Assembly (NCBI GenBank): GCA_025786725.1
Contig: JAHLTZ010000059.1
Location: forward strand, 12,975 to 76,974
Source of the DNA: Syncephalis fuscata S228
Taxonomy: Eukaryota > Fungi > Zoopagomycota
DNA: 64,000 nt
Direction: 5' to 3'
Every line of letters begins with the position of its first letter. Positions within the stretch are counted from its first letter, which is position 1. This document shows positions 29,927 to 64,000 of this stretch, one piece after another. Below the pieces are notes generated by a model that saw only the letters and a list, made by a program, of their open reading frames with translations, did no database searches and had not been told where the DNA came from. The position numbers and the translations under genes are program-made.

Positions 29927-31276
29927 ATGCACTTCAAAAAGCTGTCCCTTTTGATGGAAACTGCTTGTGGACAATCAATATTTATGACTGCAAGCAGCAA
30001 TCAGTGTTTATTTTTGTAGCTTCGCCAGCTGTGCCATTTATGGCATGGCTGCACTTATGGGAGTTTCCTTGCTAATTTATCGCTACCGACATGTTTGGTC
30101 GGTTGAAACGCGCGTTAACAGTGCTCGATTGATTCGACGCCCCGTTGACTGGATGATTGTTCATTTGGCCTGGTGCTCATTCGCACGTTCAGCGTACACT
30201 CTTTTGTTGGCAATTGACGTAATTCCAGGTGCAGCCATTCGCCAGTTGATTCTGGCATTTACCAATTGGGGCTACTTGTGGGCGCTGGCTGTTTTTCTGG
30301 CCGGTGTGGTAGAAGCATTATTTTTAGTTTTACAACAAACTTCTTTTGAAACTAACTTTCGTTGGTGTCGTGACACAAATCAGCCAAGTAGCCCAGGACG
30401 AGGAACGAGAAAGTTTTGTGGCATTTCACTACACTCGATAATGGAGCGAGGTATTCTGATGGTCATTGGACTCATAGTGTGCGTTGTGCCATGTACGGCC
30501 ACTGCTCTTTCGTATATGGCTGGTCAAGCACTAGATACAGAAAATTGGGATGAATACGCAAGACTAGAGCAGCTCAGTTGGCTAACTTGGACTGCAGGCC
30601 TAGGATGCTTAGCCTTTTTGGCTTCACTCTATCTGGGCTCTCTTTCATCTGTTCTACGCCAGTCGGCAAATCTATTACGCTTAAGCGCTGCAAGTTATGA
30701 CGCTGATACATCGCAGCAATTATTATGGCTCATCAAATTAATGATATGTTTTTATATTAGCAGCACGTTAGCATCTATTGCTCATTCACTATTATTTTCA
30801 ATAATGTTGGCTCATTTCTACCCAAGTATTGCTTATTTTGCCTTTTTTGAAGTAATTTGGTGGCCATGTCTTACTTTGATTATATTTATTGTTATTAGTC
30901 AAAATAGACAACGGACGCCTTCAAATACATTTGAAAGCAATCAGTCCAACACATTGCCAGCTTTATGGCACTCTGGCTTCTCCAGAGGACTTGCCCAAAC
31001 TTCAACACAAAGCCCAGGAATGCTTGCGCTCAATAGAAGCATTTTTCAATCCCAAATTCTTTGCATTCTGAGGATAACTTTTCTGTTCATACCTGGTCGC
31101 CTTTAATAGATAATGACACAGAGATAACACCAATACTTCCTATACGAACCTGCTCATTACCTCGTGAGTTGCCCCCATCACCCTCTGTCTCTGTTACAGT
31201 AGTTATAGAAAAGTCATTTATGGATGCGGCTGTAAACGCAGTGCCAAAGCACAAGTCGGTGCCAAACTTTTTCTAA
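29927..31276 (+). CDS. Seven-TM GPCR-like protein, C-x8-C family, paralogue R2
   Basis: Upstream of ORF 30045 the DNA encodes MHFK(K)AVPFDGNCLWTINIYDC after two homopolymer corrections. Then GVSLLIYRY, RPVDW, ARSA, RQLI, FLAGVVEA, ALDTENW, VIWWP; tail continues into ORF 31061..31276. Confidence 0.8.
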
Positions 31277-35245: not shown

Positions 35246-37465
35246 ATGACACCAGAGTCGACTGCGCCAGAATGGACTCACCATTGTTATTGGCTCACTG
35301 AAGTGCGCAATTGTCGATACGATAATGTCCACGAGAATATTGTCATTTTCAGTTTATGTGCGCATGCCATTCCAATGTTGGTTGGAACACATGCACTATG
35401 GCTTCGTTATCGACACTTATGGCGCGGCCTATACTGTCGTATTCGCGGCCATATTGTGCCATCCACCGTTGAATGTTTGCTTGTCCTTTGGACTGTTGAA
35501 AGCTATGCTCGCGTTGCCTTCTTGCTAGTTACTCTTTTGGGCGCTTGGCCTAGTCCAGTATGGCAAGAAGTGGCGTTTAGTGTTGCTATTTTTCCGTTTA
35601 TATTTGGTATTATTCTCTTTTTGTGCGGTTTAATCGCCGCCATTCCGCCGTCACTTACCTATACGCACCATGTTAACGCCGACGGCACCGACAGCTTTCA
35701 CTGGAGTTTTTCGCATTGGTCGAAAATGCCACAGCGACTTTCCGGCGCTGGTGTCTACGTACCATCCATCCGTGCTTTGCAAATCACTACTATTATCATC
35801 ATGCTTAGTATAGTAGGGGCCATTATCCCACTTTCCGTGATGAATGGACTTGCATGGTCGCAAGGCAATTGGGACGCGCTTCTTTACTGGCGAAAAATCG
35901 AATTTCTCGTTTGGGGTGCCCATGTGTTTATAATCTTCGCTATTACCATCTACTACAGCCGCGGTCTATCGGCCATCATGAGAGGCAGTCTTCAAACGCC
36001 CGAATCAGAACATGATAACACCGAACACGGCTTTACTTCAACCGACCTCTCGATTGAGCACGGTCAACGCCGAACCAACCGTACCATGAATCAACGACAG
36101 TCCTATCCAATTCAAGAAAGCTTTGTCGAACCGGAGGCCCGCCCAAGATGGCCACTGGCTTTTGTGAAAAATCCTTTGAACCGTCGCCAAGATAGTAGTA
36201 ATCAGGCCGCAGTCAATGCTGCTACCCGTGTTGAACACATTTTTACGGTGCTTCATATTGTAACGGTCTTATTTCAATATTCGCTATTATTTGGGCTTTT
36301 ATTAATCATAAAATTATTTCCGATTCTGCGGCAAATATTGCTTTAAACATTGGTATGAATGGCATCGTTCTACCATTTACCTTAGGATTTACTTTGTGGA
36401 AGCTGCAACAGTCAACACTGGCCACATTGCATACACATCTTTCTGCAGTCTATGAAAATACCAAAAATGCACTCTATCGCGTAAAAAATGCTGTACGCTA
36501 TCCTCAACACATCATTAGTGATATTGATGGTAAAGATGACTATGACATTGACGAATCCGTCAACGGTTTTAGAAAGCAGCCATTTGAGATGGCCGAAATC
36601 GACGAGGACCGCTACAACTTTTTCAGGCAAAACGAAGAGTATGTATGGCCAACAACGGCAGCTGAAGAGCAACTTAACCGAACCAACCGACCGGTAAGTA
36701 AAATATAACTAATTTGTGCTGCTATTACCATTTATTAATATTCATTATTTTATTTAGCCAAGTGTGCCGTCAAAAACAAAACTATTCAAGAGTGCATCAA
36801 ACGAAGATATTACAGAATTTAGTAGTAGTTGGCGACTACAAGCGGCATTTCACCCCAACGTCCGTCATCATCCTGTGTCTATTATCAACGGACCTGCCGT
36901 GCCACGAGCCATCCACAATGACACTGATTTGCAACCAGCATGGTGTGATCGTAGCGATATTAGCATTAAAGAGCCATGGATCCATGTCGAGAACTCTTGC
37001 GCAAATAATATGGATTTTTCATCTGATGCTATGCCACAAAACAAGCATCTTGATATGGAAGAGCTTGATGCGTTTGGCCCTCATCACAACTTTTACACAA
37101 GTCCGCCACGTCCACAATCACCTGATCCATATGATCGGGGATTCGCCAGTGATGCAGAACCTGTTAATTATTATTTACGCAACAGCAATAACAATAACAA
37201 TATTAATACTGTTACTGCTGCTACCAATAATAATAATAATAACATTGATAATATTAGTATTGATATTAATGATAGCAGTCATCATCACTACGACGACGAA
37301 GATGATAACGAAAATCATATAAGCAGTTGGTGGACAAGTGCCACTCGGCCATCACCTATCATAATGATATGGATAACTCGTCTGATGACCAAGAGTCAAC
37401 TCTGTACAGTAATCCCTTTCCAGAAGTATAGTCGCCACTGGCACCATAAGCCATTAATTCAATAA
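35246..37465 (+). CDS. Seven-TM GPCR-like protein, C-x8-C family, paralogue R3
   Basis: CYWLTEVRNC, GTHALWLRY, STVEC, ARVA, QEVAF, FLCGLIAAIPP, AWSQGNW. Restoring one T near 36272 gives TM6-7 (FSIFAIIWAF...NIGMNGIVLPF). One intron (~36694-36758) in the long Asn/Asp-rich tail. Confidence 0.8.
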
Positions 37466-38866: not shown

Positions 38867-40682
38867 ATGGGAATGAATGGCCCATCCTCTGATGAACAAC
38901 CGCTACCTAATTGTGACTGGCGTCTGTCGACAAGCAAATGCTATGCCAGTTGGATACATGAAGGTATTCTAGGCACGAGTTTAGGCTGTTACTTTTCCCT
39001 TATTCTCGCCGGCACTATACTATTACGACGTCGATGGAAGGTTGACTGGACACTGTCACAGCTCGATCGCTCCTATGGACATGCTAGGGCCGATGATGGC
39101 GGTATTCGGCGCTACTGTCCTCTTTTTCGTCGTCTCGTGCACTACACTTATTGTAATGCACAAAAAGCGCCCACCTCGCACCATAGTCGACTCGGTTCGC
39201 CGAACAACAACCATGACGATACAGTGCACTGCAACGTACACGGCACTGGTCGTTGGTCGCGCATGATAACCTCCCCCGTCGATTGTCTCTTGCTATGCTG
39301 GACATGCTATGGACTACTAAGGCTGATCGGGGTCACCATTACTCTACTCGGATTTATTAGCACAACGGAGATACAAGAAGTAGTATTTAATCTATCGCTA
39401 TGGCCAGCCTCTATTGGGGCCATCACTTTCATGGTGGGCCTAGTAGGTGGTGATCCACCTCGACGTCTTATCAACTGTTCAAGTAATAACGGCCAGCCAA
39501 AATACTGGATCCATAGACCACCTATTTGGTGTCTACAGTTTATTGCTCTATTCCATTTAATTGTCTATCCGGTTGTCACATTAACTTGTTCTATCTATTC
39601 GGGTATTAAGGCTGATTTATTTGATTTCTCGTCATCGCTGCAATGGGATAATATTTCTATATTATTCTGGTCTATTCAAACCTGGCCGTTTGCCATTATA
39701 GGCGCCGTTTATATGATTCATTGTTTACGAGTACAGCGTCGCTTTAATAGCCCGATTTATCACGAAGCAGCCCCATCTAATAGTAATGGCAATGGCCATG
39801 GCCATACAATGACTTGCCAGCCGCTTAATAATGAAGAGCTGCTTTATATTCGACAACTAAACCGTATCTACGGCACTGTAGCTGCAGTAGGCATTGCCGT
39901 TGGTCTATGGACACTTACCGCCTCGTTATTGCCTGTACGCCGTATTGGTCATACTGTCACCTCATCCATGTTAAGCAATATTGCCTTTAACTGTATTGCC
40001 CCCATTCTAGCTATTGTTATTATGATGACTGTCTAAACAAATCACGTGTCTACAAAGGCTTTTACAGCACTAATGGAAGTTATCGAATGTTATGGAGTTC
40101 CGATAAACGCTTATCTCCTCCAAAGATGATGACAGAACAACAACATCCATGGTCAACGAGCAATTCTATTTATTTACCAAAAGGTTCACTTCATCCAACT
40201 GACTATCTTCAGCAACAAGCCATTGTTCTGATATACTTGAAAGTGTTCATTCAATGGAGATGCGATCACCTTCACCTATGAAACCACCTCCTATAGCCTA
40301 TCAACGCAATGATCGACACCATCATTACCAGCAACAGTTATATCATACCAATTCAACTGCTACCACTACAGATCATGATTATAGTAGGACTAGTATAACC
40401 AGTGCTACTAGCTATACGCACTATGATGATCAAACGGGCAAACGCGTCTTTATTGAAGGGCGTGGTCCTCGAGTGAGTGCCGTGGGCACCCATAATAATG
40501 GATTCTTAACAGTGGGCACCTATAACGAAGAACGACTCGTTAATAATGCCAGTGAATATATGTCACCACGAGGTTCGTTCTCTAGTGGAGATGGACGTGG
40601 TTATATTATTGAAATGTATTCAGTGGAAGAATCAGCTTATATTGAACGTGAAATTACTGATAGTTGTGATAGCCGTGTTTAA
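38867..40682 (+). CDS. Seven-TM GPCR-like protein, C-x8-C family, paralogue R4
   Basis: CDWRLSTSKC, GTILLRRRW, SPVDC, LRLI, QEVVF, FMVGLVGGDPP, NIAFNCIAP. The tail appears to continue via indels into ORFs 40087 and 40254. Confidence 0.8.
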
Positions 40683-42315: not shown

Positions 42316-44072
42316 ATGTCGTCTCAAACCACCACTACAAAGATCATGACCGCTGACCATAAAGCAGAGACGGCACCGATAGCCGAACGGACACGTCCTC
42401 ATCCTGAAGAGATAGATGTGCCTCTATTTACACTGCTTACCACCTATATATCCTATGCTATTCTGATTGCTGTTGGGCATGTACGCGACTTTTTCGGTAA
42501 GCGATTCCGTCGTGGTGCCTACGCCTATTTGATGGAATCGGATGTAAGTAGTAATAGGCGCTGATACGAGCAATCATGGCTAGAACGACGAACAGCCAGT
42601 AGATATGAGTTGGGTTCTATTGTTGTTAATACTATCGCTATTATTGCTATTATTATAGGGATATGCACCCATTATTAGTGATTTTGAGTCTTTATATACT
42701 CGTCGTTTGTATTATCGTATTCGCGACTGTTTTAACCGTCCTGTAACGGGTGTGCCAGGCCGTACCATTAAGGTATTGGGCCGTGCATCCAGCGATTATA
42801 ACCGCACCTTCCGTATGACAGGAGAGGTGCGAGAAGTACTTAATCTTAGCTCGTATAACTATCTAGGATTTGCTCAAAGTCATGGTGCATGTGCTGATGC
42901 AGTAGAGGCGGCGCTTAACACGTATGGACCAGCTGGTGCTAGTACGCGCTTAGATTCGGGTACATTAGATCTACACATAGAAGCGGAGAAGCTAGTGGCC
43001 CGTTTTCTTGACCAAGAAGCCTCTATTATTGTGTCGATGGGATTTGCTACTAACAGTACCATTATTCCAGCTTTAGTCTCTAAAGGCTGTTTAATCATTT
43101 CAGATGAACTTAACCATGCGTCTATTGTAACTGGTGTGCGTCTATCCGGTGCCGGTATCCGTGTATTTAAACATAATGATGTTGAGGATTTGGAATTAGT
43201 GATACGGATGCCATTTCTCAGGGACAACCACGCACGCATCGTCCATGGAAGAAGATTCTTATTATTATTGAGGGATTGTACAGTATGGAAGGTGAATTTG
43301 CCGATTTACCAGCCATTATTGCGCTGAAGAAGAAATACAAGGTAAATAAGACGAATAGTGTTTAATGATTGCATTATTGATGTATTGCTATATAGTGCTA
43401 TCTATTTTTGGATGAAGCGCATTCTATCGGTGCCTTGGGTGCACGTGGTCGTGGTATTTGTGACTTTTACGGTGTCAATCCAAGTGAAGTGGATATACTG
43501 ATGGGTACATTTACCAAGTCATTCGGTGCAGCTGGTGGCTATATTGCCGGCAAACAGGCCATTATTGATCATTTACGTATTAATAGCTATGCGCCAGTCT
43601 ATGCAGAAGCAATGCCACCTCCAGTACTACAACAAGTTGTGGCATCCATGCGTATGATTATGGGCGAAGATGGCACGGATGAAGGTGCAGAGAAACTTGA
43701 AGCATTGGCCCGTAATTCTCGTTACTTTTCATCGCGTCTTCGTGAAATGGGATTTATTGTGTATGGCAATGCCAATTCACCTGTTGTTCCTATGTTGCTA
43801 TTCCATCCTGCAAAGATTGGTGCATTTTCTCGTGAATGTTTAAAGAGAAATGTTGCTGTAGTTGTTGTTTCCTATCCTGCTACACCTATCATCACTTCAC
43901 GAGTTAGATTCTGTTTATCAGCTGCTCATACCATCGAGGACCTTGATTTGGCACTGGAAAAGATTAGGTAAGTAATACTGTTGTTGTTGTTGCTACTATT
44001 ATTAATTGTAATACTAATACAACTATTATTAGTGAGGTGGGAGATATTCTTAGTCTCAAGATGCTAGCCTAA
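42316..44072 (+). CDS. LCB2: Serine palmitoyltransferase catalytic subunit 2
   Basis: [53 protein letters not shown]-lysine motif [19 protein letters not shown]. One missing G at 43206-43207. Confidence 0.96.
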
Positions 44073-46965: not shown

Positions 46966-47816
46966 AAAAGAATTATAGTATAGTTGTCAGTAAAATGCAA
47001 TGAAATGTAAATTAATGGTGATAACTTAATTAATAAAGCGTTACTAAATCTATATACAACTTTACTAAAAATGAATCAAATTGCTTGATATTTTGTACAA
47101 GCATGCATATAGCATACATGGAACTATCGACAAAATATATTGCAATTGCATTGCTTTATGGACAATGAGTGTGCTAATGCGTTAATAAATGTGCAAAATA
47201 GCAGGCTTTTACTGTTTATGGCTTGTATAACTAAAATATAGCAAACGATTGCCGGATTCAAGTTCTCCATGCTTAAATAAACCGTTTATTATGGCTTGTA
47301 AAATAATGATTTTTGCAACAAAAGTTGGCCAAAAATACGATTTATGCGATATAAACTAACGAAGCTTTACGTTATACATATGTGTATACGACATAAATTG
47401 TCATTGTATATCAGTATTTCTGCATAATAGCAAGCCATTATGCTCGCTTTAGCGCTTTAGAGCGCTTGGATTTATCTTATACCAAATTTCGTTTAATATT
47501 GAGATTTTAAATCATAAGTTTAGTTGCTTTTTTGTTAGCTATTTACACGTAAATTGTTTTTTGGCTAACATTTATTGCAAAAATCGCTGTTCTATATTTT
47601 ATACCAGACGCAGCACCTAAACATAAAAAACTTGAATCCGGCAATCGTTTTGCTATATTTTAGTTATACAAGCCATAAACAGTAAAAGCCTGCTATTTTT
47701 GCACATTTATTAACGCATTAGCACACTCATTGTCCCATAAAGCAATACAATTGCAATATATTTTGTCGATAGTTCCATGTATGCTATATGCATGCTTGTA
47801 CAAAATGTCAAGCAAT
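46966..47816 (+). mobile_element. Foldback/MITE-like repeat (family B), left copy
   Basis: Internal ~185-bp inverted arms 47080..47264 and 47629..47816 around a ~365-bp spacer. 46966..47720 is the reverse complement of 52285..53044. No ORF or clear TSD. Confidence 0.8.
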
Positions 47817-49770
47817 CAGTCTCATTTTACGCAAAATCATAAATAATCTTAGTAACGCTTATTAATTAATTAATTATTAGCTCCGCTATTGTCTTTTACC
47901 ATCTAATTACACTAGAATCACTTTTTAATATTGCTGCATAATTTCACAGCATCCAATCAGCATTTTCGTTTTTAAACTTATAAATAGCGTTTTATTAGCA
48001 TTTTAAGCTAATACAAGTAAAGATATTACGTTTTTACAATGCCATATTCTTACATTCCAATATTATGGCCATACTGCTGTGCTAGCACGCCTAAAAAACT
48101 ATCATATTATCAAAAACAATCACAGGTGAACAATTACAATAATAATATCTATCTATCTATCAAATGTCAACACTAATTACTAACAAAAAACAACTATTGC
48201 AAAGATATGACGCCTAAATACTTGTCGTTATAATAGTGTTATTATTTTAATAGCAATAGTAGTAATCTACATTGCCATCGTTGATGTGATAAGTGAATCT
48301 GGCTGCCAAATCAGTAAATTATTTGGTTTGGCAGCTGGCCGTTACCGGCTGGTTGGGTTTGTGGTGGGGGGGGGGTTTAGTCAGGCAAAGATTAAAGCTC
48401 CAATATTTGACTTTAATGTTTTTGTTAGCTCTTTGCTTATAACAATGAACAGCTGTTTGATAGCTTTATTTAGATAATAAATAATTTATAGTTGAATTGT
48501 TAGTTGTTATTACTTAATTTAACCTCTTATTGAGGTTCGCCATATTGACTACATTTGATGCAACAAACAAGACTGATGGTTACAGCTGCAAGATTTGACG
48601 CCATACGGTGACAATAGTGTTACTTCTTGTTATTCCGTAACTTTTGCTTAGTGGTGAATTCTATGTACTGTTGCTTCTATTTTGACGTGCAAAAAATTTC
48701 ACACGTTTACCATTCTGCATGTGCTGATATGCGCGACATTTACAACCAAAATAGCATGCATGAAATAGTGATGTCCATACTTCTTGGCAGTTTTACAGTA
48801 CCATGTGATTGATAAGACGGAAGACTAAGTGTAAACATCACGTAAAATTAGTAACGTGTTTAATTGTATTTTATAATACCAATTTAACCAATATAATACT
48901 TATTGGCTTATAAATAAAATCAATATTTATTCAGCACAGGCCATCAGCTTAGACTTGTTATTAGTGTTAACGTGGAGCAACAGCCAAAAGCAGTAGACAC
49001 GCTTGCATTTTGCATATGTTATGCATTGATGCACGTCAAATATTGTGCAGAAAACCTGTATTGCATACTATATTTTTTGTAAAGCTATTGATATACAACC
49101 CAGTATTTACATGGCAAAAATAAACATGTATCAGCCTGTCTTTCGACTTAAAGGATCTAGTTTCAAGTACGACCGACGCGTGAATGGTTGACGTACAATT
49201 CAACGTGAAACAGTATATTTTACCGTGACAGCACCCATGTGACTTAATCCATGCATAATCTACTGCTGGTGGTCATTGGCTTATGTCGGCTGGTAGCTGC
49301 AGAGTATCGCTATCGTATAGCAAGTTATTTATGGAACAAAGCTGCACGCAATGCATGTGAGGATTTTCTGCTACAAAGGCATTATAGTAAGCGACAATTG
49401 TTTCACAAGGCGACTTAATCGCGAACGAACCATTGCAAGGTCTAACTGTACATGGCTGTCGTACCGAATAGAATGCTACATTGGCCGAATTATGCACGAC
49501 TGTATTTTTTACCACAATGAGTGGTTCCGTATTATGCACAGTTTATTGCTTTCGTGTAAATACCGTTTTCCGAGTTGGACTATGGCCAGTCGATTAGTAT
49601 AAAAGATGTGTTGGACGACGACGTTCTACTCCACAATATCATCACATAAGCTACCAACTGCTCTCTAGCACACTCACTCAGTTCTGCACTTAGTTGTTAT
49701 ACTAATCGTTTATATATTTGTTCGGTATCTATTGCACAATACTTTTGGCATTATAAATATTATTTTCAGT

Positions 49771-50919
49771 ATGCGTACTTATTCTTCTTTGACTTTTGCC
49801 TGCTTCTTGGTCGCTGCGCTGGCCCGCATCGATACAACAGCCGCTCTGCCAACCTACAACAGCTATGGAGCTCCCGCAACATACACTGCACCAATGGCTA
49901 ATCACCAACGACCAGAATTTGGCCATGGACGTGAAATGAACAACCGTGACCACGAGCGTTATGGCAAGCCAGCTTATGGTGGCCGTCGCCCTGAGGACTG
50001 TGACGACGATCACAAGCCAGCATATATTACCAAGCGTGGCTACAACGACTACTCGGCCAAGCCAGCCGGTGGACGTGACCACGACCGCGACTACGACAAC
50101 CACGGCAAGCCAGGCATGGGTCACGGCAACGACCACCATGACAAACCAGCTCACGGTGGCCGTCGTCCTGAAGACTGCGATGATGAGCACAAGCCAGTGT
50201 ATGTCACCAAGCGTGGCTACAACGACTACTCGGCCAAGCCAGCTCATGGCAATCGTCCTGAAGACTGCGATGACGAGCATAGTCAAAAGCCAGCTGGTGG
50301 CCACGACCACGGCCGCGACTACGACAACCACAGCAAGCCAGGCATGGGTCACGGCAACGATCACCACGACAAACCAGCTCACGGTGGCCGTCGTCCCGAA
50401 GACTGCGATGATGAGCACAAGCCAGTGTATGTCACCAAGCGTGGCTACAACGACTACTCGGCCAAGCCAGCTCATGGCAATCGTCCTGAAGACTGCGATG
50501 ACGAGCATAGTCAAAAGCCAGCTGGTGGCCACGACCACGGCCGCGACTACAACGACCACGGCAAACCAGGCATGGGCCACGGCAACGACCACCACGACAA
50601 ACCAGCTCACAATGGCCGTCGTCCCGAAGACTGCGATGATGAGCACAAGCCAGTGTATGTCACCAAGCGTGGCTACAACGACTACTCAGCCAAGCCGGCC
50701 GGTGGTCGTGACCACGACCGCGACTACGGCAACCACGGCAAACCAGGCATGGGCCACGGCAACGACCACCACGACAAACCAGCTCACGGTGGTCGTCGTC
50801 CCGAAGACTGCGATGATGGGCACAAACCCATCCCAGCTCCATACATTCCACCACGCAGGTAAGTTATTTTTATTCCAAATACATTTTTACTAATATATTT
50901 CTCGATTAGTGCATACTAA
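49771..50919 (+). CDS. Secreted Kex2-processed repeat protein (KEP-like peptide precursor), His/Asp/Gly-rich
   Basis: Signal peptide MRTYSSLTFACFLVAALARIDTTAA; four Y[IV]TKR|GYNDYSAKPA junctions at 50032, 50209, 50437, 50665; seven RPEDCDD motifs. Terminal intron 50859..50909 gives ...PYIPPRSAY*. Confidence 0.88.
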
Positions 50920-51454: not shown

Positions 51455-52284
51455 ATTGCATAATTTTATGATCTACTGGCCACATTTATTCATTATATTA
51501 CAACACAATTTGCCTATTCTATCCATTAAGTTGTGAGTGTTATAGCTTTACTTCCATTATTCATAGACATTTCATTTTTTATTGCTACTCGTAGCATATT
51601 TTCCTACACGATTGCGTCTCCTCAGTCTCCCAATGATCAATTGTTAATAAAAACTACTTAGTTTATTACTTGTAACGACTAAGTAAACCACAATGATTCT
51701 TTGGCAGTTAGCGACTACTGCAGTTTGACAACAATAAACTGAATAATGTTTGTAGCTAAAACTAGAAAAAATAAAACGAGGTAACTGATGATATTTTATT
51801 TGAATGATAAAAATATTCGCATATTTATGCTGAAATGCTGCGTGTACATTAAATATTGTTTAATAAAATTGAACGTTTTTTTCATTCATGTGGCGCTTAT
51901 CAGTTCATATGACTGACTATATAAGTTGAATAGCAGATTGGTTCAAAGATCATTTGTATTATTGATACTGTGGACTATACTTAGAAATAGTTAATGCCGC
52001 TATATACTTACGAATATTCGCACGTATATTGGTAACTTCATTGGACTATATGTATCGGATATGCCATACGCTCGGTAGCTCATGTTGGAACAATCAATCA
52101 TGTAACTTATCAACGGTATTTATAATTATATCTGGCCACGTGATATTAATGTGTATTTAATACCTTTTAGATTTTTTGATATAATTAATATAGTTATTAG
52201 TGCATCTGTAGCAGCGTATAATATATGGATAGCTATTGGCAAAATATATCATAATTACATTGTGTGATTATGTAGTTATTGCAA

Positions 52285-53044
52285 TAATGCGTTAATAAAT
52301 GCGTAAAAATAGCAGGCTTTTACTGTTTATGGCTTGTATAACTAAAATATAGCAAAACGATTGCCGGATTCAAGTTTTTTATGTTTAGGTGCTGCGTCTG
52401 GTATAAAATATAGAACAGCGATTTTTGCAATAAATGTTAGCCAAAAAACAATTTACGTGTAAATAGCTAACAAAAAAGCAACTAAACTTATGATTTAAAA
52501 TCTCAATATTAAACGAAATTTGGTATAAGATAAATCCAAGCGCTCTAAAGCGCTAAAGCGAGCATAATGGCTTGCTATTATGCAGAAATACTGATATACA
52601 ATGACAATTTATGTCGTATACACATATGTATAACGTAAAGCTTTGTTAGTTTATATCGCATAAATCGTATTTTTGGCCAACTTTTGTTGCAAAAATCATT
52701 ATTCTACAAGCCATAATAAACGGTTTATTTAAGCATGGAGAACTTGAATCCGGCAATCGTTTTGCTATATTTTAGTTATACAAGCCATAAACAGTAAAAG
52801 CCTGCTATTTTGCACATTTATTAACGCATTAGCACACTCATTGTTCCATAAAGCAATACAATTGCAATATATTTTGTCGATAGTTCCATGTATGCTATAT
52901 GCATGCTTGTACAAAATGTCAAGCAATTTGATTCATTTTTAGTAAAGTTGTATATAGATTTAGTAACGCTTTATTAATTAAGTTATCACCATTAATTTAC
53001 ATTTCATTGCATTTTACTGACCAACTATACTATGATTATCTTTT
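52285..53044 (-). mobile_element. Foldback/MITE-like repeat (family B), right inverted copy
   Basis: Near-identical reverse complement of 46966..47720; one internal arm is truncated. Confidence 0.8.
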
Positions 53045-53975: not shown

Positions 53976-54837
53976 TATTTAATTATATTGTTTTCTGGCG
54001 GTCAAACGACTGTATTTAGTAATATTTAATCTATTAAACATGATGGCGGGTGAATGACATCAGTTATCAAATACTCATCATCGTAGATTCATTATCCAGT
54101 ATGCATATATCCACCATTTACTTGTATCCTTTATCCGCCTATATAATTATCGCTGTAAATTTATACTATTATATATAGTTTTATGCTATATTGAATACAT
54201 TTGTTTGCTATAAATTTCAAGTACATATAAACTGATGGACGAATGACTGACACTAGTTGAAACATTAATAACTGAGCTAGAACCAAACAGACAACAGCTA
54301 CAGACAGCGCATGTTCAATATATAATAAAATAATATGCAATATAACGAAGATACAATATTGAACGGCGATTAGCTCTGTTAAAGCTATTGAGCATATATG
54401 CATGATCAATGAGCGGAACTAGTCAACATTTATAAATAATAAAGCTAGAACAAAAATAAAAGCAGTTTTGGATAGAGGAAGGTTAGATAATTATTGAATG
54501 GCATATAAAACGCTGTTGAAGTTATAGTGCGTATAATGTAATAAGTGAGGCGAGTGTAGTGCGTTGGAGTATATAATAAACGGAATGTGTCTAGTATATT
54601 GTAGAATGGTATATGGCGGTGTGGAATAGTATAGAAATGATATAGGTGAATAGAGGATATATGTATACTGAATATGTATACTGGATAATGAATCTACAAT
54701 GATGAGTATTTGATGATTAATGTCACTCACCACCCACCATCAGTTCAATCAACTGAATGCTATTAAATGTAATCATTTGCCGCTAAATCACAATAAATGT
54801 GATGATGTGATGATTAAATAGAACTCACCACTTGTTC
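53976..54837 (-). mobile_element. MITE-like repeat (family A, long form, 862 bp), left copy
   Basis: Near-identical reverse complement of 59792..60653 (identical spurious ORFs in both). Diverged internal arms at ~53986..54109 and ~54672..54795. Confidence 0.82.
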
Positions 54838-55065
54838 ATATATTTACTAGAATGAATATTTTTGAATGTTGTCATTGAACACCAACCTATACTAAAAATC
54901 AATAAGCGGTTTAATATTAATGTAGTAGACTTTATTGTTTCAAACTTATTGACTCACAGTACCAATATTACAGCAATTTGCTTTATTTACGGATGTAAAC
55001 AAACAATAATCAAATGGAGTATTATCTTTGTAATCATTTTAATCTATATAGTTCAAAAATTACAT

Positions 55066-57754
55066 TCAATCGTCCCAGCCATTTTCTTCAACTGCTCGGC
55101 GTGCCTCTTGTTTAGCTTCTTGAATCCAGGTACGAAGGAATTCATAGCGTTCTTGCCGTCGACGAGATGCTGTCCCGCTGGCCCGTGTCATAAGCTGCTC
55201 TAATACCTGGGCCGCTTCTTCTTGGACAGCACGATCAGTAGCCATTTTCCATGTACGTTCTGCCATTTCACATCGCTCAACATCACTGGTTAGACGCCGG
55301 TAAAGACGTAGATGTTCCTTGTGAGCGTCTTTAAATAGACGATATAGTTGTCGTAGATCAGAGCGTGTAGTGACAGTCGGTGGATGTTCAGGTAATTTTA
55401 CAGGCTTATGCATTGGTTCTCTATTACCCGATACTGTGGGAACAGCCATGGTAGCTGTAGCATTTGAAGTAGCTATAGCCGTGGTAGTAGTTGTAGCACT
55501 TGGAGTAGCTGCACTGTTAGTGGTAGATATAATGCTTGTTGTTTCATTGGATATTGTTGGTTGAGTAGCTGGTGTTGTAGCTGGAACAGCTGGTCGTGCT
55601 GAAGCAACCTTAGTCGTTGGTGTAGTAGAAGGCGTCGTCAAACGAGTTCGTTTTATCGATGGTTTACTGCTGCTAGAAGCTAGTAAGGCTGTAGCATCTG
55701 CTTTCTTTGACTTTGTCGCTGGCAGTGATCGTTTAAGCGATTCATTGCCTTCTGAAGATAGCGATAATTTACCTGGACCTTCTGATTTTTCTACCAGCGA
55801 CGAGTCAATATCCAAATGGGCTGTGGGTGCTGGTGTCACTGCCGCCCATGGACTTGGGATAGATGGCTCTGTTGGTTCTGTAGCCTTTGTTGCTGCTGTA
55901 TCTGCTGCTGCTGCTGCTGCTGCGACGGCGGCAGCTTTTTTGGATTGTCGTTGACGTTTTGGCTTAACAGGTGTCGTTTCCTGTGTAGTAGATTCTGTTT
56001 CAGATGCAGTAGTTGATGTTTTTGTACTAGTAGCTGTTGTAGATCCTGGTCGCTTGGACATTGCTGTTAATTTAGCAAGAGTAGAAGCGCCTTTTTTTCC
56101 TCCAGATGTACTATTATTTTTATTCTTAGTTGCCGGCGTTGTAGTTGCAGTAATCGTTGTAGCTGCTGCTTTTGCATCATTTGTTATTACTAGAGTATCA
56201 CTGCCGGGTGTAGCTGTAGACGATGTAGTGGCTGATGTTGAAACAGGAGACGGTAAAGATGGATAGTTAGCTAATCTACTCCATGCTGGATCAGCTTCTG
56301 AAAGTCCTGTACATTCAAAGACTGATCGCATTGTCGATGCAACCTTCTTTCGTTCATCTTCTGTCCAGCCAGGCCATGTATCTACCTGTATTTCGCTATA
56401 GCTAGCATCTTGTAGTACCCAAGCATTGTTGGTAAAGCGGCCCACCTAAACATAAATAAATAAATACCAGTTAATGCACAATTTAGCTCTACTTACTTGA
56501 CGTAATGTCTCTCGAAAGCTGTCGTCTTCTGTTGCACCAGCTCGTTCCTGTGCTTGTTTAAATTCCATGGGCTTTAGCGCTAAAGCATGTATTACTCGCT
56601 CTTTTAATGTGCCTTTGTGATCCCAACCAGCTGGACGTGTCTCTGGTGCTAAAAGCATAACACGCTCCCGTGCATCTTCTGATAAGCCAAGTTTATCAAA
56701 TGCTTGCTGTGCTAGCGAAATAACCATGGCCCGTTCCTCGTCCGTATAATCCCATTCATAAATCTGTACATCTTGATAACACTCTGGCTTTAAATAGTAG
56801 ATTGAGCCTTGTCTGTCAGATAGCTATGTATCATGATAATTAGACACCAATTAATTAGCATATTAAGTCATAATATTACCCGTGAAAGATCAGCCGTTAA
56901 TGCTTCTGGTCTCTGGGCCATTCGTGTTTGTAGTGTGCCAATGTCAATAGGACCCATAGCTAATAGTTTCAACAGACGTGCACGTAGCGGCATACCGTGT
57001 CGTTTTGGCGCAGACGTAGTTTGATTGGCGGCTACCGCTGCAAGTGCAGCAGCCTGTGCAGCAGGTGAATCTACACCATAAGCCGACGATCCAGCATTAC
57101 CGCCGGCCAGTTTTGCTGGTGATCGTGCTGTATTAGCCGCACGGGCCGCAATTTGCTGAGGTGTCAGCGCCTGCATGCTAACCGCGGCAGGAGGCTGGTG
57201 CCGATGTCGCCGACTATCAAGCTGCGATACAGACGGTGCACTAATTGTTATTTATGCATACACCCTATCAGTATCATAATACTTGATACTATAATCCACC
57301 TTACCGTCGTATGGCTGACTCCGTATCGACAGCACGCTGCGTTCGGAATGGCTGCGCTGGCTGTTTCGCGGCAGCTGGCAGCGCCGACGATCCCGACATC
57401 GATCGGCCGGTAACTGCATATACTTGTCGCTGCGTTCCTAGCAGCTGGAGCGCCGAGGTATCGCCGGGCACTTTACGATAAACCTCACGCACTTCGCGAT
57501 CCCCAGCTAGAACGCGGCGATCTAGCCGGAATGTGGCCTCACCAATATGTAGAAAAGGCTCGCCCTGTATAACCGGTCAGTTTATAGATTTCTAGCTACC
57601 CGGTATAAATTGGTTTTACCTGTTCAAACACCACGGTACAGGAGTCACCGCGGCGCAATGCGGCGAGTGTCTCCTCAGTCAACCGCAAGCCAACAACTGG
57701 ACGTACGCCTTTGTTCGGCTCGCAACGCAGCGCCAAGGTTGAAGTCCAGCTCAT
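55066..57754 (-). CDS. RNA polymerase II elongation factor ELL-like protein
   Basis: N-terminal GLRLTEETLAAL; LKERVIHALALKP...WPGWTEDER (ELL middle domain); low-complexity linker; C-terminal occludin/ELL-like VTTRSDLRQLYRLFKDAHKEHLRLY. Confidence 0.75.
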
Positions 57755-58601
57755 TTTTACGGAAAAAGCAAAAAAGTATTCACTTTGCTGGTCCGGTTTG
57801 CAGCTGGCCTTAAGCAAGGAATGATTATCTAAATAAACTAATAACAAATAGAAAGATACCAAATAGAAAAAGAATCCACGTATTTACCATTGGTATTAAT
57901 CAGATGATTTTATTGCAATTGATATTATACACCAATAAAGTTTAAATTAACTTGAAGCCCGTGGAGCACATGGCCGTTTGAGACTTTGTAACACTACAGC
58001 TAGTTATTTTTAAAGTCCCAAGTTTATGAATAGTGCAGGGAAAACATACTATCAATTTTTCTTTAAAGATTGCACACCACAGACAACAGCAGCAACGATA
58101 ACGACAATGAATAAACTCTGTTAATATTAGAGAATAGGTCAGAGATAGCTATAATTGCCGAGGTGCCTCGTTTATGTGGTAGGACCGATTGATAAGATGG
58201 AGCCAAGGTGACAATTAAACATGCCATCATATTGTTTTAAGTTAATTGGCAGCAATAAACCAGTTTTCAATACAAACTTCAAAAGAAATGGGGTAATAAT
58301 ATCAATAGACAATGACTATTCGCAGATAATAAAATACTAATGATGGCAGTCCTCTGTGTGTGTAACAGAATAATGTGATAGCGCCATATGAATTTTACAT
58401 AAAGCACGGGAATACTAAACATAACTGCCGCCACAGTTTTCGACTAATGCCTTGTTTTATTTACGAATCTTTTACTTTTTACGATAGCTACAAAGATTAT
58501 AGCAATTATTACAGCACTGAATACACGTGAAATTGCTATTTTTATGACTGATTAAATATACTGCTCTTTAAGTAGCGTATTATTTTGTAACGAATTGCAC
58601 T

Positions 58602-59660
58602 ATGAAAGCTCTTTATCCATCTTCCGATGTACTATGTACACCTCATATCAATCTATATGACTGTGCTGGTCACATTCCACTATCCTATGCAGCAGCCGTA
58701 TGTGCTACTGTATCATCTTTGACTTTTTTATTTGGCCTTGTAGTCATTCTTTATCGTTGGCATCATGGTATTCTAACTGAGCTGTTTCGTCGAGTTAATG
58801 GCTACTGGATACCTGTACCGCTAGATATACTTATTGTTGTTATATGTCCAGTAGAAGCGCTAAGATCTATTATGTACATTCTAGTGCTTCTTGACTGGCC
58901 AAAAAGTATGGTTTTCCGCAATGTTCTTGGTATGGCAGTGCTGATTTTATTAGTATTTGCCGTTACACTGTTTGTCTCGGGTATCATTGCTCATATCCCG
59001 CCTGTGTTTACACGCACAAGTTGGTCCAAATCAAAAATAGCCGTCACATGTGGGGGACCATGCAAGCTATTTGTACCATCAACACGAGTAGTTTATTGGA
59101 CCACTGTTGTGTTCTGCACTCTTATTTTGCTATTAGGCTTTTGTACAAGCGCAATTGTCGGATGGGGCGAGGAACACGGGCTGGCCGCCGTAGCAAAAAA
59201 CGCACATAAAGGCGTAGCGTTTACACTTGCCATTAGCATTCTTATCATGTTCATTGTCAATGGCTATTACAGTTATGGCTTTTACAAAATCCTTTGCAGC
59301 CACGTTGAGCGCTCTTCCAGCCAAGGATTAGTAAATGGCGCTGAAATTGATGCAGCTCGTCGCTTTCGAAACATGTTTCTAGCTGTTATTGCAGCCTGCA
59401 TTCTTGGTTGCACATTTGCCGTGCTAAGCGATGTATTATCCGAACAAATCAGCCGAATTCTATGGTGGAATGTTACCTTTTCCGTTATACGCTATGGCGT
59501 ATTTTTCCCGGGCATTCAATGGATATTATATTATAATATCTTCCAAAGTTCACAAGTCCGTGTGCACCGTGCTACTTCACATGCCGCTGCTACAAAAACT
59601 GGTGCTTCTGAAATGTTTTCCAGTCCGTGCCATAGTATACATCAAGCTACCGCCGTATAA
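58602..59660 (+). CDS. Seven-TM GPCR-like protein, C-x8-C family, paralogue R5
   Basis: Uninterrupted 352-aa ORF: CTPHINLYDC, GLVVILYRW, VPLDI, LRSI, RNVL, FVSGIIAHIPP, GVFFP; seven hydrophobic segments; short tail. Confidence 0.82.
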   Translation: MKALYPSSDVLCTPHINLYDCAGHIPLSYAAAVCATVSSLTFLFGLVVILYRWHHGILTELFRRVNGYWIPVPLDILIVVICPVEALRSIMYILVLLDWPKSMVFRNVLGMAVLILLVFAVTLFVSGIIAHIPPVFTRTSWSKSKIAVTCGGPCKLFVPSTRVVYWTTVVFCTLILLLGFCTSAIVGWGEEHGLAAVAKNAHKGVAFTLAISILIMFIVNGYYSYGFYKILCSHVERSSSQGLVNGAEIDAARRFRNMFLAVIAACILGCTFAVLSDVLSEQISRILWWNVTFSVIRYGVFFPGIQWILYYNIFQSSQVRVHRATSHAAATKTGASEMFSSPCHSIHQATAV

Positions 59661-59791
59661 ACAGACACATAGGCCCAAAATATAATAAATATAACGCAAT
59701 TAAAACAAATCAATAACTATTTATTAAAATGCAATAACTATATTTAATAACATTCGCGCAATTGAACTGTACATTCAATCTATTGAACATG

Positions 59792-60653
59792 GAACAAGTG
59801 GTGAGTTTTATTTAATCATCACATCATCACACTTATTGTGATTTAGCGGCAAATGATTACATTTAATAGCATTCAGTTGATTGAACTGATGGTGGGTGGT
59901 GAGTGACATTAATCATCAAATACTCATCATTGTAGATTCATTATCCAGTATACATATTCAGTATACATATATCCTCTATTCACCTATATCATTTCTATAC
60001 TATTCCACACCGCCATATACCATTCTACAATATACTAGACACATTCCGTTTATTATATACTCCAACGCACTACACTCGCCTCACTTATTACATTATACGC
60101 ACTATAACTTCAACAGCGTTTTATATGCCATTCAATAATTATCTAACCTTCCTCTATCCAAAACTGCTTTTATTTTTGTTCTAGCTTTATTATTTATAAA
60201 TGTTGACTAGTTCCGCTCATTGATCATGCATATATGCTCAATAGCTTTAACAGAGCTAATCGCCGTTCAATATTGTATCTTCGTTATATTGCATATTATT
60301 TTATTATATATTGAACATGCGCTGTCTGTAGCTGTTGTCTGTTTGGTTCTAGCTCAGTTATTAATGTTTCAACTAGTGTCAGTCATTCGTCCATCAGTTT
60401 ATATGTACTTGAAATTTATAGCAAACAAATGTATTCAATATAGCATAAAACTATATATAATAGTATAAATTTACAGCGATAATTATATAGGCGGATAAAG
60501 GATACAAGTAAATGGTGGATATATGCATACTGGATAATGAATCTACGATGATGAGTATTTGATAACTGATGTCATTCACCCGCCATCATGTTTAATAGAT
60601 TAAATATTACTAAATACAGTCGTTTGACCGCCAGAAAACAATATAATTAAATA
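59792..60653 (+). mobile_element. MITE-like repeat (family A, long form, 862 bp), right inverted copy
   Basis: Reverse complement of 53976..54837. Confidence 0.82.
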
Positions 60654-60961
60654 AAATATAATAATATTATCATATAAATAAAATGGCTAAATGAAGTACT
60701 ATATATAGAAAGACTATGGATAGACTAGTCATTACCAAAACCATTAAACTGTTGCATAGTAGTAATGTTTTTATATTGATCATCACTGTTTAAGTACAAT
60801 GATTAACAAAACATTCTCAACAGCGTATAAATGATATAAATAAAAACAATACGTCTGTAATAATTATATGCTAAATATTTCAAGTTAAATTTTACTTAAT
60901 AAAACGCAACGATGAAGGCAACCATTGTACAAACAATAAACACATCTATTTTGTTGGTTGT

Positions 60962-62407
60962 TCATTTGTTATAAGAAGAATTTGTTGGTGAACCATATTG
61001 ACCAATGGTTTCTAAAGAATATTCGTTATGATAGCTTAATACTGAAACTGCATTAGACATGGCTGAGGCGTTATGTTCGGATAAAGAATGGGCCATAAAG
61101 TAAGCACCAGTTGAATCTAGACTGGATATTTCCACAAGCTCCGTAAGATTTGTTGGTGAGCGGCCACGCGATACTAACGGCCGAGTAGTAGACCTGAGTG
61201 ATGACCGCGATGTTTTTGATACAAGTTGCGATCGGCTGGCACTGGCTGCTGCGTTGTTGTATTCATTGGTTTCACGTGCCATGCTAGGCCGCGTATGAAT
61301 AGAATAAGTAACAGCCGTTTCAATGGCTCTACTTCTATTTGATTCTATTGTGGATGAAGCATGAATACGACTGAAAATCGCCATAATAAAGCATGGCCAA
61401 CAAAGTACTAGCGTATAAATTTCAAGAATGCCACTGGCCGCTTCATTGGATAATATCTTTCTTTTGGTGAAAGCACCAATGCTGGCAGAAACCGCTGTGG
61501 TAGCAACTAGTATTAATTCTAAAAGCAGCGTGCGTTTTAATTGACGGATTGTCCGAGCTCGTGCCACCATAGCATTGCTATGATAGTTGATGGTGCATGA
61601 CGACATTGAGGATGACCTTGGCTTATTTATATAACACCCTGTCGATTTAATCATTGCTGCAGTAGGTATAGGTGTTGTATGGTTGGCCGTAATAGCTTGA
61701 GCTGAAGTTGATTGCTGAAATAGATATTCTTGCTGTCGTAGCAACGATGCCAATGCACCAAAATAACAAGCACTTACAACTGCAATAAGTAACATAACAA
61801 AAGACCAAATAAACCACGTAATTTGATTCCAAAATATGTAGCGTGACCATTCGCCACGATCACCGTATTGGCCGGCCAGCCACGCTGTAGCGCTTGTAAT
61901 AGGCGGTACGGTCGTTGCTAAAACGCCAAGTCCACCAAGAACCATTTGGTACGGCGGGGCTTGCCAGCGAGTTTCCTGTAGGTTGGCCAGTACAGGTGAT
62001 ACTGTTTCAATTACTCCGGCTGTGAATAGCAACGTGCCGAAATAGCCACAAACAAACGATAGGCTAGAAAGTGGCTCTCTTATTGCTAATTTCGGTGCAA
62101 CATCTAACAGACAAATAAGAATATAGATTGTGCGCGTCATAAGGAACGCAGAAAAGCAAGCGACCATGCCATCGACAGGTCGTGCTATATAGCGATGTGA
62201 TACATTGGTAGGTGTATCGTGTTGATGGCTTCGTCGCCAGAAATATCGACGCCTCCAAAGAACAAAGCCACCCAGCATTGTTACAGCCAAATGAATGGCA
62301 ATAGCGGCATAGCCTAGTCCGTGGTGCCACAGCTCATTTTCGCAATCAGTTAGATTGACGGCCCAGTCACATCCTGGCGCAAATGGTGGAGGTATATCAA
62401 AATGCAT
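60962..62407 (-). CDS. Seven-TM GPCR-like protein, C-x8-C family, paralogue R6
   Basis: Uninterrupted 481-aa ORF: MHFDIPPPFAPGCDWAVNLTDC, GGFVLWRRR, RPVDG, TRTI, REPL, FTAGVIETVSP, YGDRGEW, LCWP; seven hydrophobic segments; Ser-rich tail. Confidence 0.85.
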   Translation of the reverse strand: MHFDIPPPFAPGCDWAVNLTDCENELWHHGLGYAAIAIHLAVTMLGGFVLWRRRYFWRRSHQHDTPTNVSHRYIARPVDGMVACFSAFLMTRTIYILICLLDVAPKLAIREPLSSLSFVCGYFGTLLFTAGVIETVSPVLANLQETRWQAPPYQMVLGGLGVLATTVPPITSATAWLAGQYGDRGEWSRYIFWNQITWFIWSFVMLLIAVVSACYFGALASLLRQQEYLFQQSTSAQAITANHTTPIPTAAMIKSTGCYINKPRSSSMSSCTINYHSNAMVARARTIRQLKRTLLLELILVATTAVSASIGAFTKRKILSNEAASGILEIYTLVLCWPCFIMAIFSRIHASSTIESNRSRAIETAVTYSIHTRPSMARETNEYNNAAASASRSQLVSKTSRSSLRSTTRPLVSRGRSPTNLTELVEISSLDSTGAYFMAHSLSEHNASAMSNAVSVLSYHNEYSLETIGQYGSPTNSSYNK

Positions 62408-64000
62408 CGTTGGCAGCAGTGTGTATATGCTCTATCCGCAAGTACATAAGCGGTCTGAAATACAGCGTCAACGCACATATACACCCAGTCACTTAAAACT
62501 AGCTAGTAAAGATCCGCATACAATGGCAGATAAATGCGTAAAATTTGTTATAATTACTAAGAACGCAGAAATGTAGAATTTAATGATATCGCGGTTTCGT
62601 TAACACGGTTAGCGTGTATGGTTTCGTATACAATGAGACGTCAAATTGCGTTAGGAAACAAAAGAATCAAGAAAAGCTGTGGGGCTAGAAGCCACTATCC
62701 ATTATGTTCACTAATATGGTTTTATTCATTTACTTCATCAAAAATGGAGAGCACACGTGCGATCGCCCGAATTGGCTTTATTGCTTTGAATAGAACACTG
62801 AAATTGCTTTAACTAAGTGACGGCAGTTGAATATCCGCTATTTTTTGCTTTTTAGGCATTGCCTATTTAAGCAGTATGTCCACGTGCCCGCAGATAAAAT
62901 AATAGTCATAGTTGCCCAACACATTACAAGCAAAAGGCAAGATTCAACCACCTCTATCTTTTTACTTTATCGTGTAGATAAATAGTCCTATTTTTACAAA
63001 CGTGCCACAACAGCTTTTGTATTTTAAAAATAGAAAACGACTATTCTAAAAGGATGCGAAGAAGATATCAATCTCGAAAGTGATATTGATCGGTACGTGA
63101 AAATATTGTCTTGTGCTGGACCAAAAGTCCGACTGACTACTAAGCCTTAAAAGGTACACAAAATTTCTATATTCAGGGCACATGGGTAGCATGTGCTCAA
63201 TATAAATACGCGCATGATTGCTTGTATTTTAATAAAAAAACAGTCTTTATGCCAGCATTATTTTATTATTATTTAGTAAATTTATCACATTATAATGTAT
63301 GTTTTGGCTGTCATCACATTGTGATTCCGTATATTATTACAAATTTTACACTTGAATACAATATACATTTTATACGTTGATATAGCAACTATAATGTTGT
63401 CTAATGTTCTAGTTTGTATTTGTTATAATTATGGTTAGTCCAGAGTCATTCAGCGTAAATAAATCCATTATAATTATTATAATTATTAGTTGTGTTGTAA
63501 TAATAAAATTGACGTAAAAGTAAATTAATATTTATTATTTAATAAAACTAAAACAATTTAATTGCATAGATAATTAATTATGCTAAATTTAAATAGTTAT
63601 ACGCAAGTTTACATTTATCCATTATGCAGCAAGCATGTATATAGCATTTAGTGTAACGAATAGTCATTCATTACAAAAAATAATCGTAAAAAAATATTTA
63701 CACAACTATTTTCCCACGGTTACTTTAATTTAATATCCGTAAACTTTATGTATGATTTACACAATTATATTAAATAAAGCTTATTCTTTATCCATTATAC
63801 ATTGTTTACTATTGTTAAATTTAATATACATGATAATAATACCAAGTAACTAGATAAAACTTTATTACATCCATTAATTATAATATGTTTTATAATATAC
63901 CAACATATTAATAGATAAACGTTTATTTATAACTAATGATTATTTTTATTATGCTCAGTAATTTATTATGATTTATTTATATAGCATTATAAACTATTTA

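Follow-up and report, generated by a model that had tools for sequence, protein, structure and literature searches.

The gene described here lies in a window of 64,000 nucleotides, the whole stretch of Syncephalis fuscata S228 DNA that was analysed, and encodes a putative secreted precursor built of tandem units separated by KR dipeptides. Its open reading frame comprises 363 codons, from the ATG at 49771 to the TAA at 50860, in one uninterrupted frame (translation of window positions 49771-50859), and the surrounding region is about 36-42% G+C and eukaryotic. The features of the locus, in window coordinates, are the following.

46986..47791, no strand: left inverted-repeat arm flanking the precursor gene (pair I1, 549 nt, 94%; pair I2, 177 nt, 99% complementarity)
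49598..49605, + strand: TATAAAAG box, about 170 nt before the ATG; Syncephalis plumigaleata has an identical octamer upstream of its orthologue
49671..49680, + strand: CACTCACTCA motif, within what may be the 5' leader or start region; S. plumigaleata carries a CACTCACTCACTCA run at the matching place
49771..49845, + strand: predicted signal peptide, residues 1-25, with the cut predicted after A18 or A25 (hydrophobicity, -3/-1 rule, AF2 helix)
49846..50037, + strand: leader fragment ending RRPEDCDDDHKPAYIT-KR; first KR codons at 50032-50037
50038..50214, + strand: unit A1 of 59 aa, opening with GYNDYSAKPA and closing with HKPVYVTKR; KR codons at 50209-50214
50215..50442, + strand: unit B1, 76 aa, similar to A1 plus a 17-aa segment (second RPEDCDDEH), two Cys; KR codons at 50437-50442
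50443..50670, + strand: unit B2, 76 aa, missing in the four copies on contig C356; KR codons at 50665-50670
50671..50858, + strand: C-terminal unit A2, exon-1 part, ending ...GHKPIPAPYIPPR
50859..50909, + strand: putative intron, 51 nt, GTAAGT ... CTAAT ... TTAG; donor at the same codon in three species
50910..50919, + strand: putative mini-exon, 10 nt, giving the C-terminus -(S)-A-Y-stop; equivalents in two relatives
52214..53021, no strand: right inverted-repeat arm flanking the precursor gene; the same arms separate the alternating copies on C356

The translated N-terminus (MRTYSSLTFACFLVAALARIDTTAALP...) is signal-like, with an MR n-region, a hydrophobic core of 12 residues (LTFACFLVAALA, Kyte-Doolittle 2.5-2.8) and AXA-type sites after A18 and A25; this call is based on hydrophobicity and the -3/-1 rule as heuristics. 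Outside the signal peptide, the highest hydrophobicity over 19 residues is -0.32 on the same scale, and no second hydrophobic stretch is present. The KR dipeptides fall at residues 88-89, 147-148, 223-224 and 299-300, with intervals of 59, 76 and 76 aa (177, 228 and 228 nt), and delimit four units of 59, 76, 76 and 63 aa with four Y-[IV]-T-K-R|G-Y-N-D-Y junctions. GYNDYSAKPA opens all four units, each of which contains GMGHGNDHHDKPAH and RRPEDCDD, and HKPVYVTKR closes units 1-3. The leader also holds RRPEDCDD, and its final stretch (RRPEDCDDDHKPAYITKR) stands directly before the first unit. The 17-aa segment with the second RPEDCDDEH motif is the main difference between long and short units, and Tandem Repeats Finder reports a period of 228 nt over 50059-50696 (2.8 copies, 95% matches, score 1164). 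The original prediction of a signal peptide, a leader and KR-delimited repeats is borne out by this layout, including all the motifs that it quoted and the three spacings.

The precursor is rich in Asp and Gly (13% each), His and Pro (10% each), Arg (8%) and Tyr (6%). Its AF2 model has a mean pLDDT of 37 and no fold, the signal peptide being the sole helix, and the mature chain is thus predicted to be fully disordered, so that every KR site should be accessible. Two overlapping reading frames, an antisense ORF of 305 aa (49729-50646, - strand) and an ORF in the +2 frame (49946-50893), were rejected as by-products of the codon composition of the repeats, because only the frame of the ATG at 49771 encodes a signal peptide, matches an orthologue and shows codon optimisation.

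Relatives of this protein are few. A word-indexed search of 5.8 billion proteins gave one match, a hypothetical protein of 358 aa from S. plumigaleata (E 2e-23), and only one further relative, a JGI metagenome fragment, emerged when 1.84 billion cluster representatives were searched exhaustively with an HMMER profile. The relative from a third species is found on two short metagenome contigs, which keep the intron and are therefore DNA that gives no expression evidence. Pfam returned sub-threshold noise only for the precursor (PhdYeFM, 18 bits; SSI, 13 bits), a PDB sequence search gave no match at E <= 1, and an ESM-atlas feature search gave only weak, non-diagnostic matches (0.84 or below). 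Also, no mention of this family was found in the literature on Syncephalis secreted proteins, and both GYNDY and GYNNY are absent from the available part of the supplement text of PMC7329392.

The S. plumigaleata gene is a positional (syntenic) orthologue, since beside it lie homologues of window ORFs 60962-62407 and 58602-59660 (about 60% identity) together with an ELL-like gene. The precursors themselves are 36% identical, versus 60% for the neighbouring proteins, and this identity is unevenly distributed, being 17 of 26 residues in the signal peptide, 26 of 36 aligned residues in the twelve-residue surroundings of KR, and 78 of 211 aligned residues (about 37%), with many gaps, in the rest. 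As a side observation, the public S. plumigaleata model (GCA_025201365.1, JAIXMF010000001.1, L014:11008-11650) omits further repeat units in shifted frames, to be explained either by indel errors within the repeat or by partial decay of the array; with these skipped units, the true unit number would be above that of the 358-aa model.

Across the three species, the boundaries follow the motif P-[AV]-Y-[ILV]-[TVM]-K-R | [GN]-Y-x-[DN]-Y, and its surrounding codons differ synonymously (CCA/CCC/CCG, GGC/GGT, AAC/AAT, TAC/TAT). Loss of KR in orthologues had been named beforehand as one outcome that would refute the proposal, and the proposal passes this test. Of the 13 unit boundaries, 12 have KR, the third species having five AYLMKR|GY boundaries and one in which KH takes its place. 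The four KR of the window alone would be within chance, given that about two are expected from composition and that three of the four were copied by one recent duplication. What is beyond chance, judging from the alignments, is the retention of KR at 12 of 13 boundaries in three diverged species despite interiors that are only about 37% identical where alignable. Also kept is the D-C-D cysteine upstream of each boundary, as [ED]DCDD in the window and KDCDK in the relatives.

The interiors of the units behave differently, being acidic and His/Asp-rich in the window (pI 6.0-7.2) and basic and Ser/Lys/His-rich in the relatives (pI about 10). The His/Asp/Cys-rich core of the original prediction is thus present in the window, although it is not the conserved part of the unit, and this change of charge weakens the case for an acidic chelator or a signal of a specific kind. 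What the species share is the boundary motif, one Cys together with the Tyr residues in each unit, and a His/Gly-rich disordered character.

The end coordinate 50919 of the original prediction implies an intron at 50859-50909 and a last exon of 10 nt, and comparison among the species supports both. In S. plumigaleata, GTAAGT after the pre-stop codon is followed by TACTAAT, TTAG and then T GTT TAC TAG (P-V-Y-stop), and the same layout leads to P-I-Y-stop in the third species. The branch-point-like motif is CTAAT in the window and in S. plumigaleata and CTAAC in the third species, and all three share the AG acceptor and an [AVI]-Tyr-stop mini-exon. As non-coding sequence would lose alignability at such divergence, the 3' intron and the [AVI]-Tyr C-terminus are taken as real, and the unspliced end (..PPRR-stop, 50860-50862, as in the public S. 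plumigaleata model) is not adopted, since the three species have donor, branch point, acceptor and Tyr-stop mini-exon in common. It is possible that the intron lies within the 3' UTR of some transcripts. Exon 1 (window positions 49771-50859) served as the query for the homology searches, and exon 2, which amounts to three codons, was read by eye.

Codon usage sets the precursor apart from its neighbourhood. Its GC3 is 0.59 and its fraction of C-ending NAY codons (NAC) is 0.76, close to the reference values of cytosolic EF-1alpha (0.60 and 0.72) and GAPDH (0.63 and 0.75), and nine neighbouring ORFs have GC3 of 0.25-0.44 and NAC of 0.19-0.35. The same tendency is found in the precursors of the relatives. 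The gene is apparently highly expressed, to judge from its codons, and the TATAAAAG octamer would be a conserved promoter box.

Moreover, four more copies of the gene are found on C356, a contig of 31 kb, in alternating orientation and with 99% identity. Three of these encode 287 aa, with one long unit missing, and the fourth (C356:16630-17445, - strand) is frameshifted by a deletion of 1 nt near its 3' end. In C356:1-20800 (loci L009, L011 and L012) the copies stand head-to-head across an inverted-repeat element and tail-to-tail across a spacer of 1.75 kb that is absent from the window, and the rest of the contig is 99.6% identical to window positions 54787-64000. C356 would be either the other haplotype with a (palindromic) amplification of the cassette, a segmental duplication, or a mis-assembly or artefact; as a haplotig or palindromic artefact, it could lower the true copy number, which is five at most. 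The arms of the inverted repeat are about 800 bp long with an internal foldback in each (pairs I3 and I4), and may be a foldback-type element or the recombination substrate for the C356 amplification. GAPDH itself has two matches of equal score, one on a large contig (C13:572695-573168) and the other on a small one (C236:8300-8773), and this duplicate, like C356, hints at haplotigs or duplicated small contigs in the assembly.

Among the other genes of the window is a family of six orphan multi-pass membrane proteins without a Pfam match, at 26296-27729 (-), 30045-31106 (+), 35246-36346 (+), 38867-40036 (+), 58602-59660 (+) and 60962-62407 (-). For the product of 58602-59660, AF2 gives a model with seven long helices (pLDDT 75, pTM 0.70), and in a Foldseek search of the PDB its best 50 matches are all GPCRs, weakly so (E 0.01-0.05, TM 0.3-0.55); in the ESM atlas, the model matches a Mucoromycota cluster without a name at a TM of 0.74. 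Two of the six 7TM genes adjoin the precursor gene in S. plumigaleata as well. The DNA that separates the 7TM cluster from the precursor cassette holds a class I/II aminotransferase gene with two exons (42707-43327 and 43408-43971, +), which looks like an ordinary housekeeping gene. Elsewhere in the genome, tyrosinase (PF00264) gives 40 matches at roughly 20-25 loci, many of them clustered on C223:399000-463500 and some with internal stops, and these loci would be a possible cross-linking capacity. Enrichment of tyrosinases in Zoopagomycota is already published (PMC10079182).

The enzyme required for processing is encoded in the genome. A kexin gene lies on contig C317 at about 796.5-799.7 kb, with matches to the S8 and P-domains, the latter (PF01483) being matched only once in the genome. 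Its product combines a pro-region and the catalytic D/H/N/S motifs (DDGID, HGTRCAGE, ASGNGG and GGTSAAAP) with a P-domain, an acidic tail and what is predicted to be a TM segment, and by these features the encoded kexin is intact. The boundaries of the three species suit such an enzyme, P4 being always I, L or V, P2 Lys, P1 Arg except at the KH boundary, and P1' small. An aliphatic P4 is preferred by Kex2 (Rockwell and Fuller 1998, as cited in PMC2515848), and small P1' residues are favoured (PMC2515848; PMC6624476). The precursor is very probably cut at the four conserved KR sites into His-rich peptides of about 60-76 residues, and its processing by kexin into a leader fragment plus four peptides is likely.

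The internal RR-Pro sites had been expected to survive because Pro at P1' would block Kex2. The expected survival fits the relatives, where the equivalents are KR-Pro in one orthologous unit and TK-D in the others, so that a dibasic site is not conserved there in most units, and the direction of the effect is supported by a review, although "blocked" is too strong, since according to the latter a P1' Pro "appears to disturb" processing (PMC6624476).

On the other hand, KR is embedded in a longer conserved motif, and its conservation could reflect a purpose other than cleavage. The precursor might then be an uncleaved, secreted and disordered repeat protein of the wall, the spore surface or an adhesive matrix, with PxYxxKRGYxDY as a cross-linking or binding module. 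This would account for the conservation of all 12 motif residues and not of KR alone, and for a motif that is rich in Tyr and adjoins the conserved Cys in a genome with many tyrosinase loci. It also agrees with the KH boundary of the third species, with KR sites that stay uncut in some secreted fungal proteins, and with the finding that only about two thirds of predicted Kex2 sites are cut in vitro (PMC2515848). However, the sites of the precursor lie in a chain predicted to be disordered, with an aliphatic P4 and a small P1' that are favourable for kexin, an intact kexin gene is present, and KR is maintained at the boundaries while other Lys and Arg residues vary freely. These observations make an uncleaved protein unlikely, and the best explanation, which we consider probable, is a KEX2-processed repeat protein (KEP) of the Syncephalis lineage.

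For such a KEP, the following pathway can be proposed. The signal peptide would carry the disordered pro-protein into the secretory pathway, where Golgi kexin would cut after each [ILV]-[TVM]-K-R that precedes G-Y and spare RR-Pro, and KR would then be trimmed off, probably by a carboxypeptidase. This would yield the leader fragment and, in the order A-B-B-A, four peptides related to one another and roughly 57-76 residues long, each starting with GYNDY... and containing 7-10 His and 1-2 Cys inside the acidic DCD motif, with the internal ones ending in ...KPVYVT. Once released, these peptides could form a His/Tyr/Cys-rich coat at a surface or interface, perhaps where the fungus contacts its host mould. 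The charge of this coat would switch with pH, from a net value of about -4 at pH 7.4 to about +6 at pH 5, and its peptides may bind metals or be cross-linked via Tyr, Cys and His.

The five copies and a codon usage typical of the top expressed genes suggest bulk production. High predicted expression, amplification and the conservation of the interiors at the level of composition argue for a bulk material over a specific signal or a tailored RiPP, and we favour abundant extracellular material over a low-dose signal. A cross-linked or metal-bound surface or adhesive material would be a reasonable guess in view of the conserved Tyr at both ends of the units, the one Cys in each of them, the abundance of His and the many tyrosinases of the genome. 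Since the unit interiors vary in charge and composition, no specific chemistry can be pinned down. A histatin-like antifungal role at the host interface would be an alternative.

Members of Syncephalis live as obligate parasites on other moulds, and to our knowledge almost nothing is known of the molecules they secrete. A more specific role as a mycoparasite weapon or glue can be imagined, in which the kexin-released peptides would be oxidised by tyrosinase or loaded with metal at the appressorium or haustorium interface, or would act as antifungal effectors, as the basic, histatin-like relatives could; in a weaker variant they would be ligands of the syntenic GPCR-like 7TM family. If this were true, the interiors would evolve fast under host pressure, with the ends for processing and cross-linking held fixed. 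This scenario is improbable.

For the KEP reading preferred here, the interest lies in the biology of the product in a mycoparasite. Knowledge of the KEP class is unchanged by this precursor, the class being already catalogued in Zoopagomycota. Judged by its EF-1alpha-like codons, a copy number of up to five and the putative promoter box that is conserved in S. plumigaleata, the precursor looks like one of the top expressed secreted products of the genome. It is unusual for a Kex2-type precursor in keeping the flanks of the cut sites, one Cys and Tyr, with interiors that shift between acidic and basic from one species to another. Moreover, it offers a concrete and inexpensive target for peptidomics, with predicted GYNDY N-termini and VYVT C-termini, and is a candidate through which the chemistry of surfaces, adhesion or metals could be studied in a fungus of an early-diverging lineage.

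In comparison with known systems, KEPs are defined by a signal peptide, internal repeats and KR, RR or KK between the repeats (Le Marquer et al. 2019, PMC6339444). The precursor shows a signal peptide without a membrane anchor (by heuristics, and conserved in the orthologue), four units where at least three internal repeats are asked for, and KR at all four boundaries, and a kexin is encoded in the genome (C317). At the level of sequence it thus agrees with the class on every point, and reported KEP repeat sizes of 3-352 aa cover its units. The class is set by architecture and not by homology, and no sequence relative of the family was found beyond three Syncephalis-like sequences, the window's own included; the precursor is a new lineage-restricted family within an already known class, with a few unusual traits. 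Precursors with KR-separated repeats had been described in the original prediction as characterised mainly in Dikarya. This does not hold, as KEPs are catalogued in Zoopagomycota at 11.6 per strain, the most of any phylum, including Syncephalis pseudoplumigaleata (Umemura 2020, PMC7329392).

Rep1 of Ustilago maydis would be the best functional analogy. It is likewise secreted, and Kex2 cleavage at KR releases numerous related peptides of considerable length (37 aa, PMC6339444) that form bulk material of the hyphal surface, and a surface role of the window peptides would follow by analogy. Unlike those of Rep1, the window peptides are hydrophilic, rich in His, Asp, Gly and Pro and predicted to be disordered, with a conserved Cys and a terminal Tyr. 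Homology to Rep1 was not found, the HMMER search over 1.84 billion representatives giving only the two Syncephalis-like relatives, and the likeness is limited to architecture and peptide size.

The precursors of ustiloxin, phomopsin and asperipin (dikaritins) share the signal peptide, the KR-separated repeats and a conserved Tyr beside the cut site, and a RiPP of this type, as the original prediction had suggested by likeness, would treat VYVT and GYNDY next to KR as modified cores and the His-rich stretches as spacers. In favour of this, the most conserved residues flank KR and include Tyr, as in dikaritin precursors (PMC6339444), and tyrosinases are plentiful in the genome. However, the window units are far longer and lack an EDYxI-type core, their conserved Tyr motifs being PVYVT and GYNDY. 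Moreover, a profile search of the whole 29-Mb genome (371 contigs) gave no match to UstYa/DUF3328 (PF11807), while the same type of search detected the kexin P-domain (PF01483) and tyrosinases (PF00264) and prokaryotic control genomes were silent for PF11807, as expected. No tailoring-enzyme gene was found among the scanned neighbours, and codon-optimised spacers of 45-60 aa would be wasteful. A RiPP is therefore very improbable.

In the precursors of Saccharomyces alpha-factor (MFalpha) and of other ascomycete alpha pheromones, a signal peptide and a leader precede tandem copies that are delimited by KR, and processing is carried out by Kex2 and Kex1. Pheromone cores are short, of about 13 aa. 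With the same precursor logic, two orphan 7TM genes that stay neighbours in S. plumigaleata and one seven-helix model whose best 50 PDB matches are all GPCRs, weakly, the precursor could be read as that of a peptide signal, pheromone-like or for host sensing, perceived by the adjacent 7TM proteins. This reading is highly doubtful, as the STE13 signature XA/XP that follows KR in alpha-factor is replaced by GY or NY, no short conserved mature peptide is found in units of 59-76 aa with diverged interiors, the peptides would be disordered and of low complexity at 57-76 aa and acidic in one species and basic in another, codon bias and amplification suggest a bulk product, and the GPCR assignment is weak, with adjacency alone being no proof.

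Finally, histatins, the His/Gly-rich proteins of squid beak and Nereis jaw, and mussel foot proteins are histidine-rich secreted peptides or materials. The window precursor resembles them, as a compositional analogy only, in being disordered and rich in His, Gly, Tyr and Lys, with frequent K-P and G-H-G. For the peptides of a Syncephalis KEP, this composition suggests metal binding, a pH-switchable charge and Tyr-based cross-linking.
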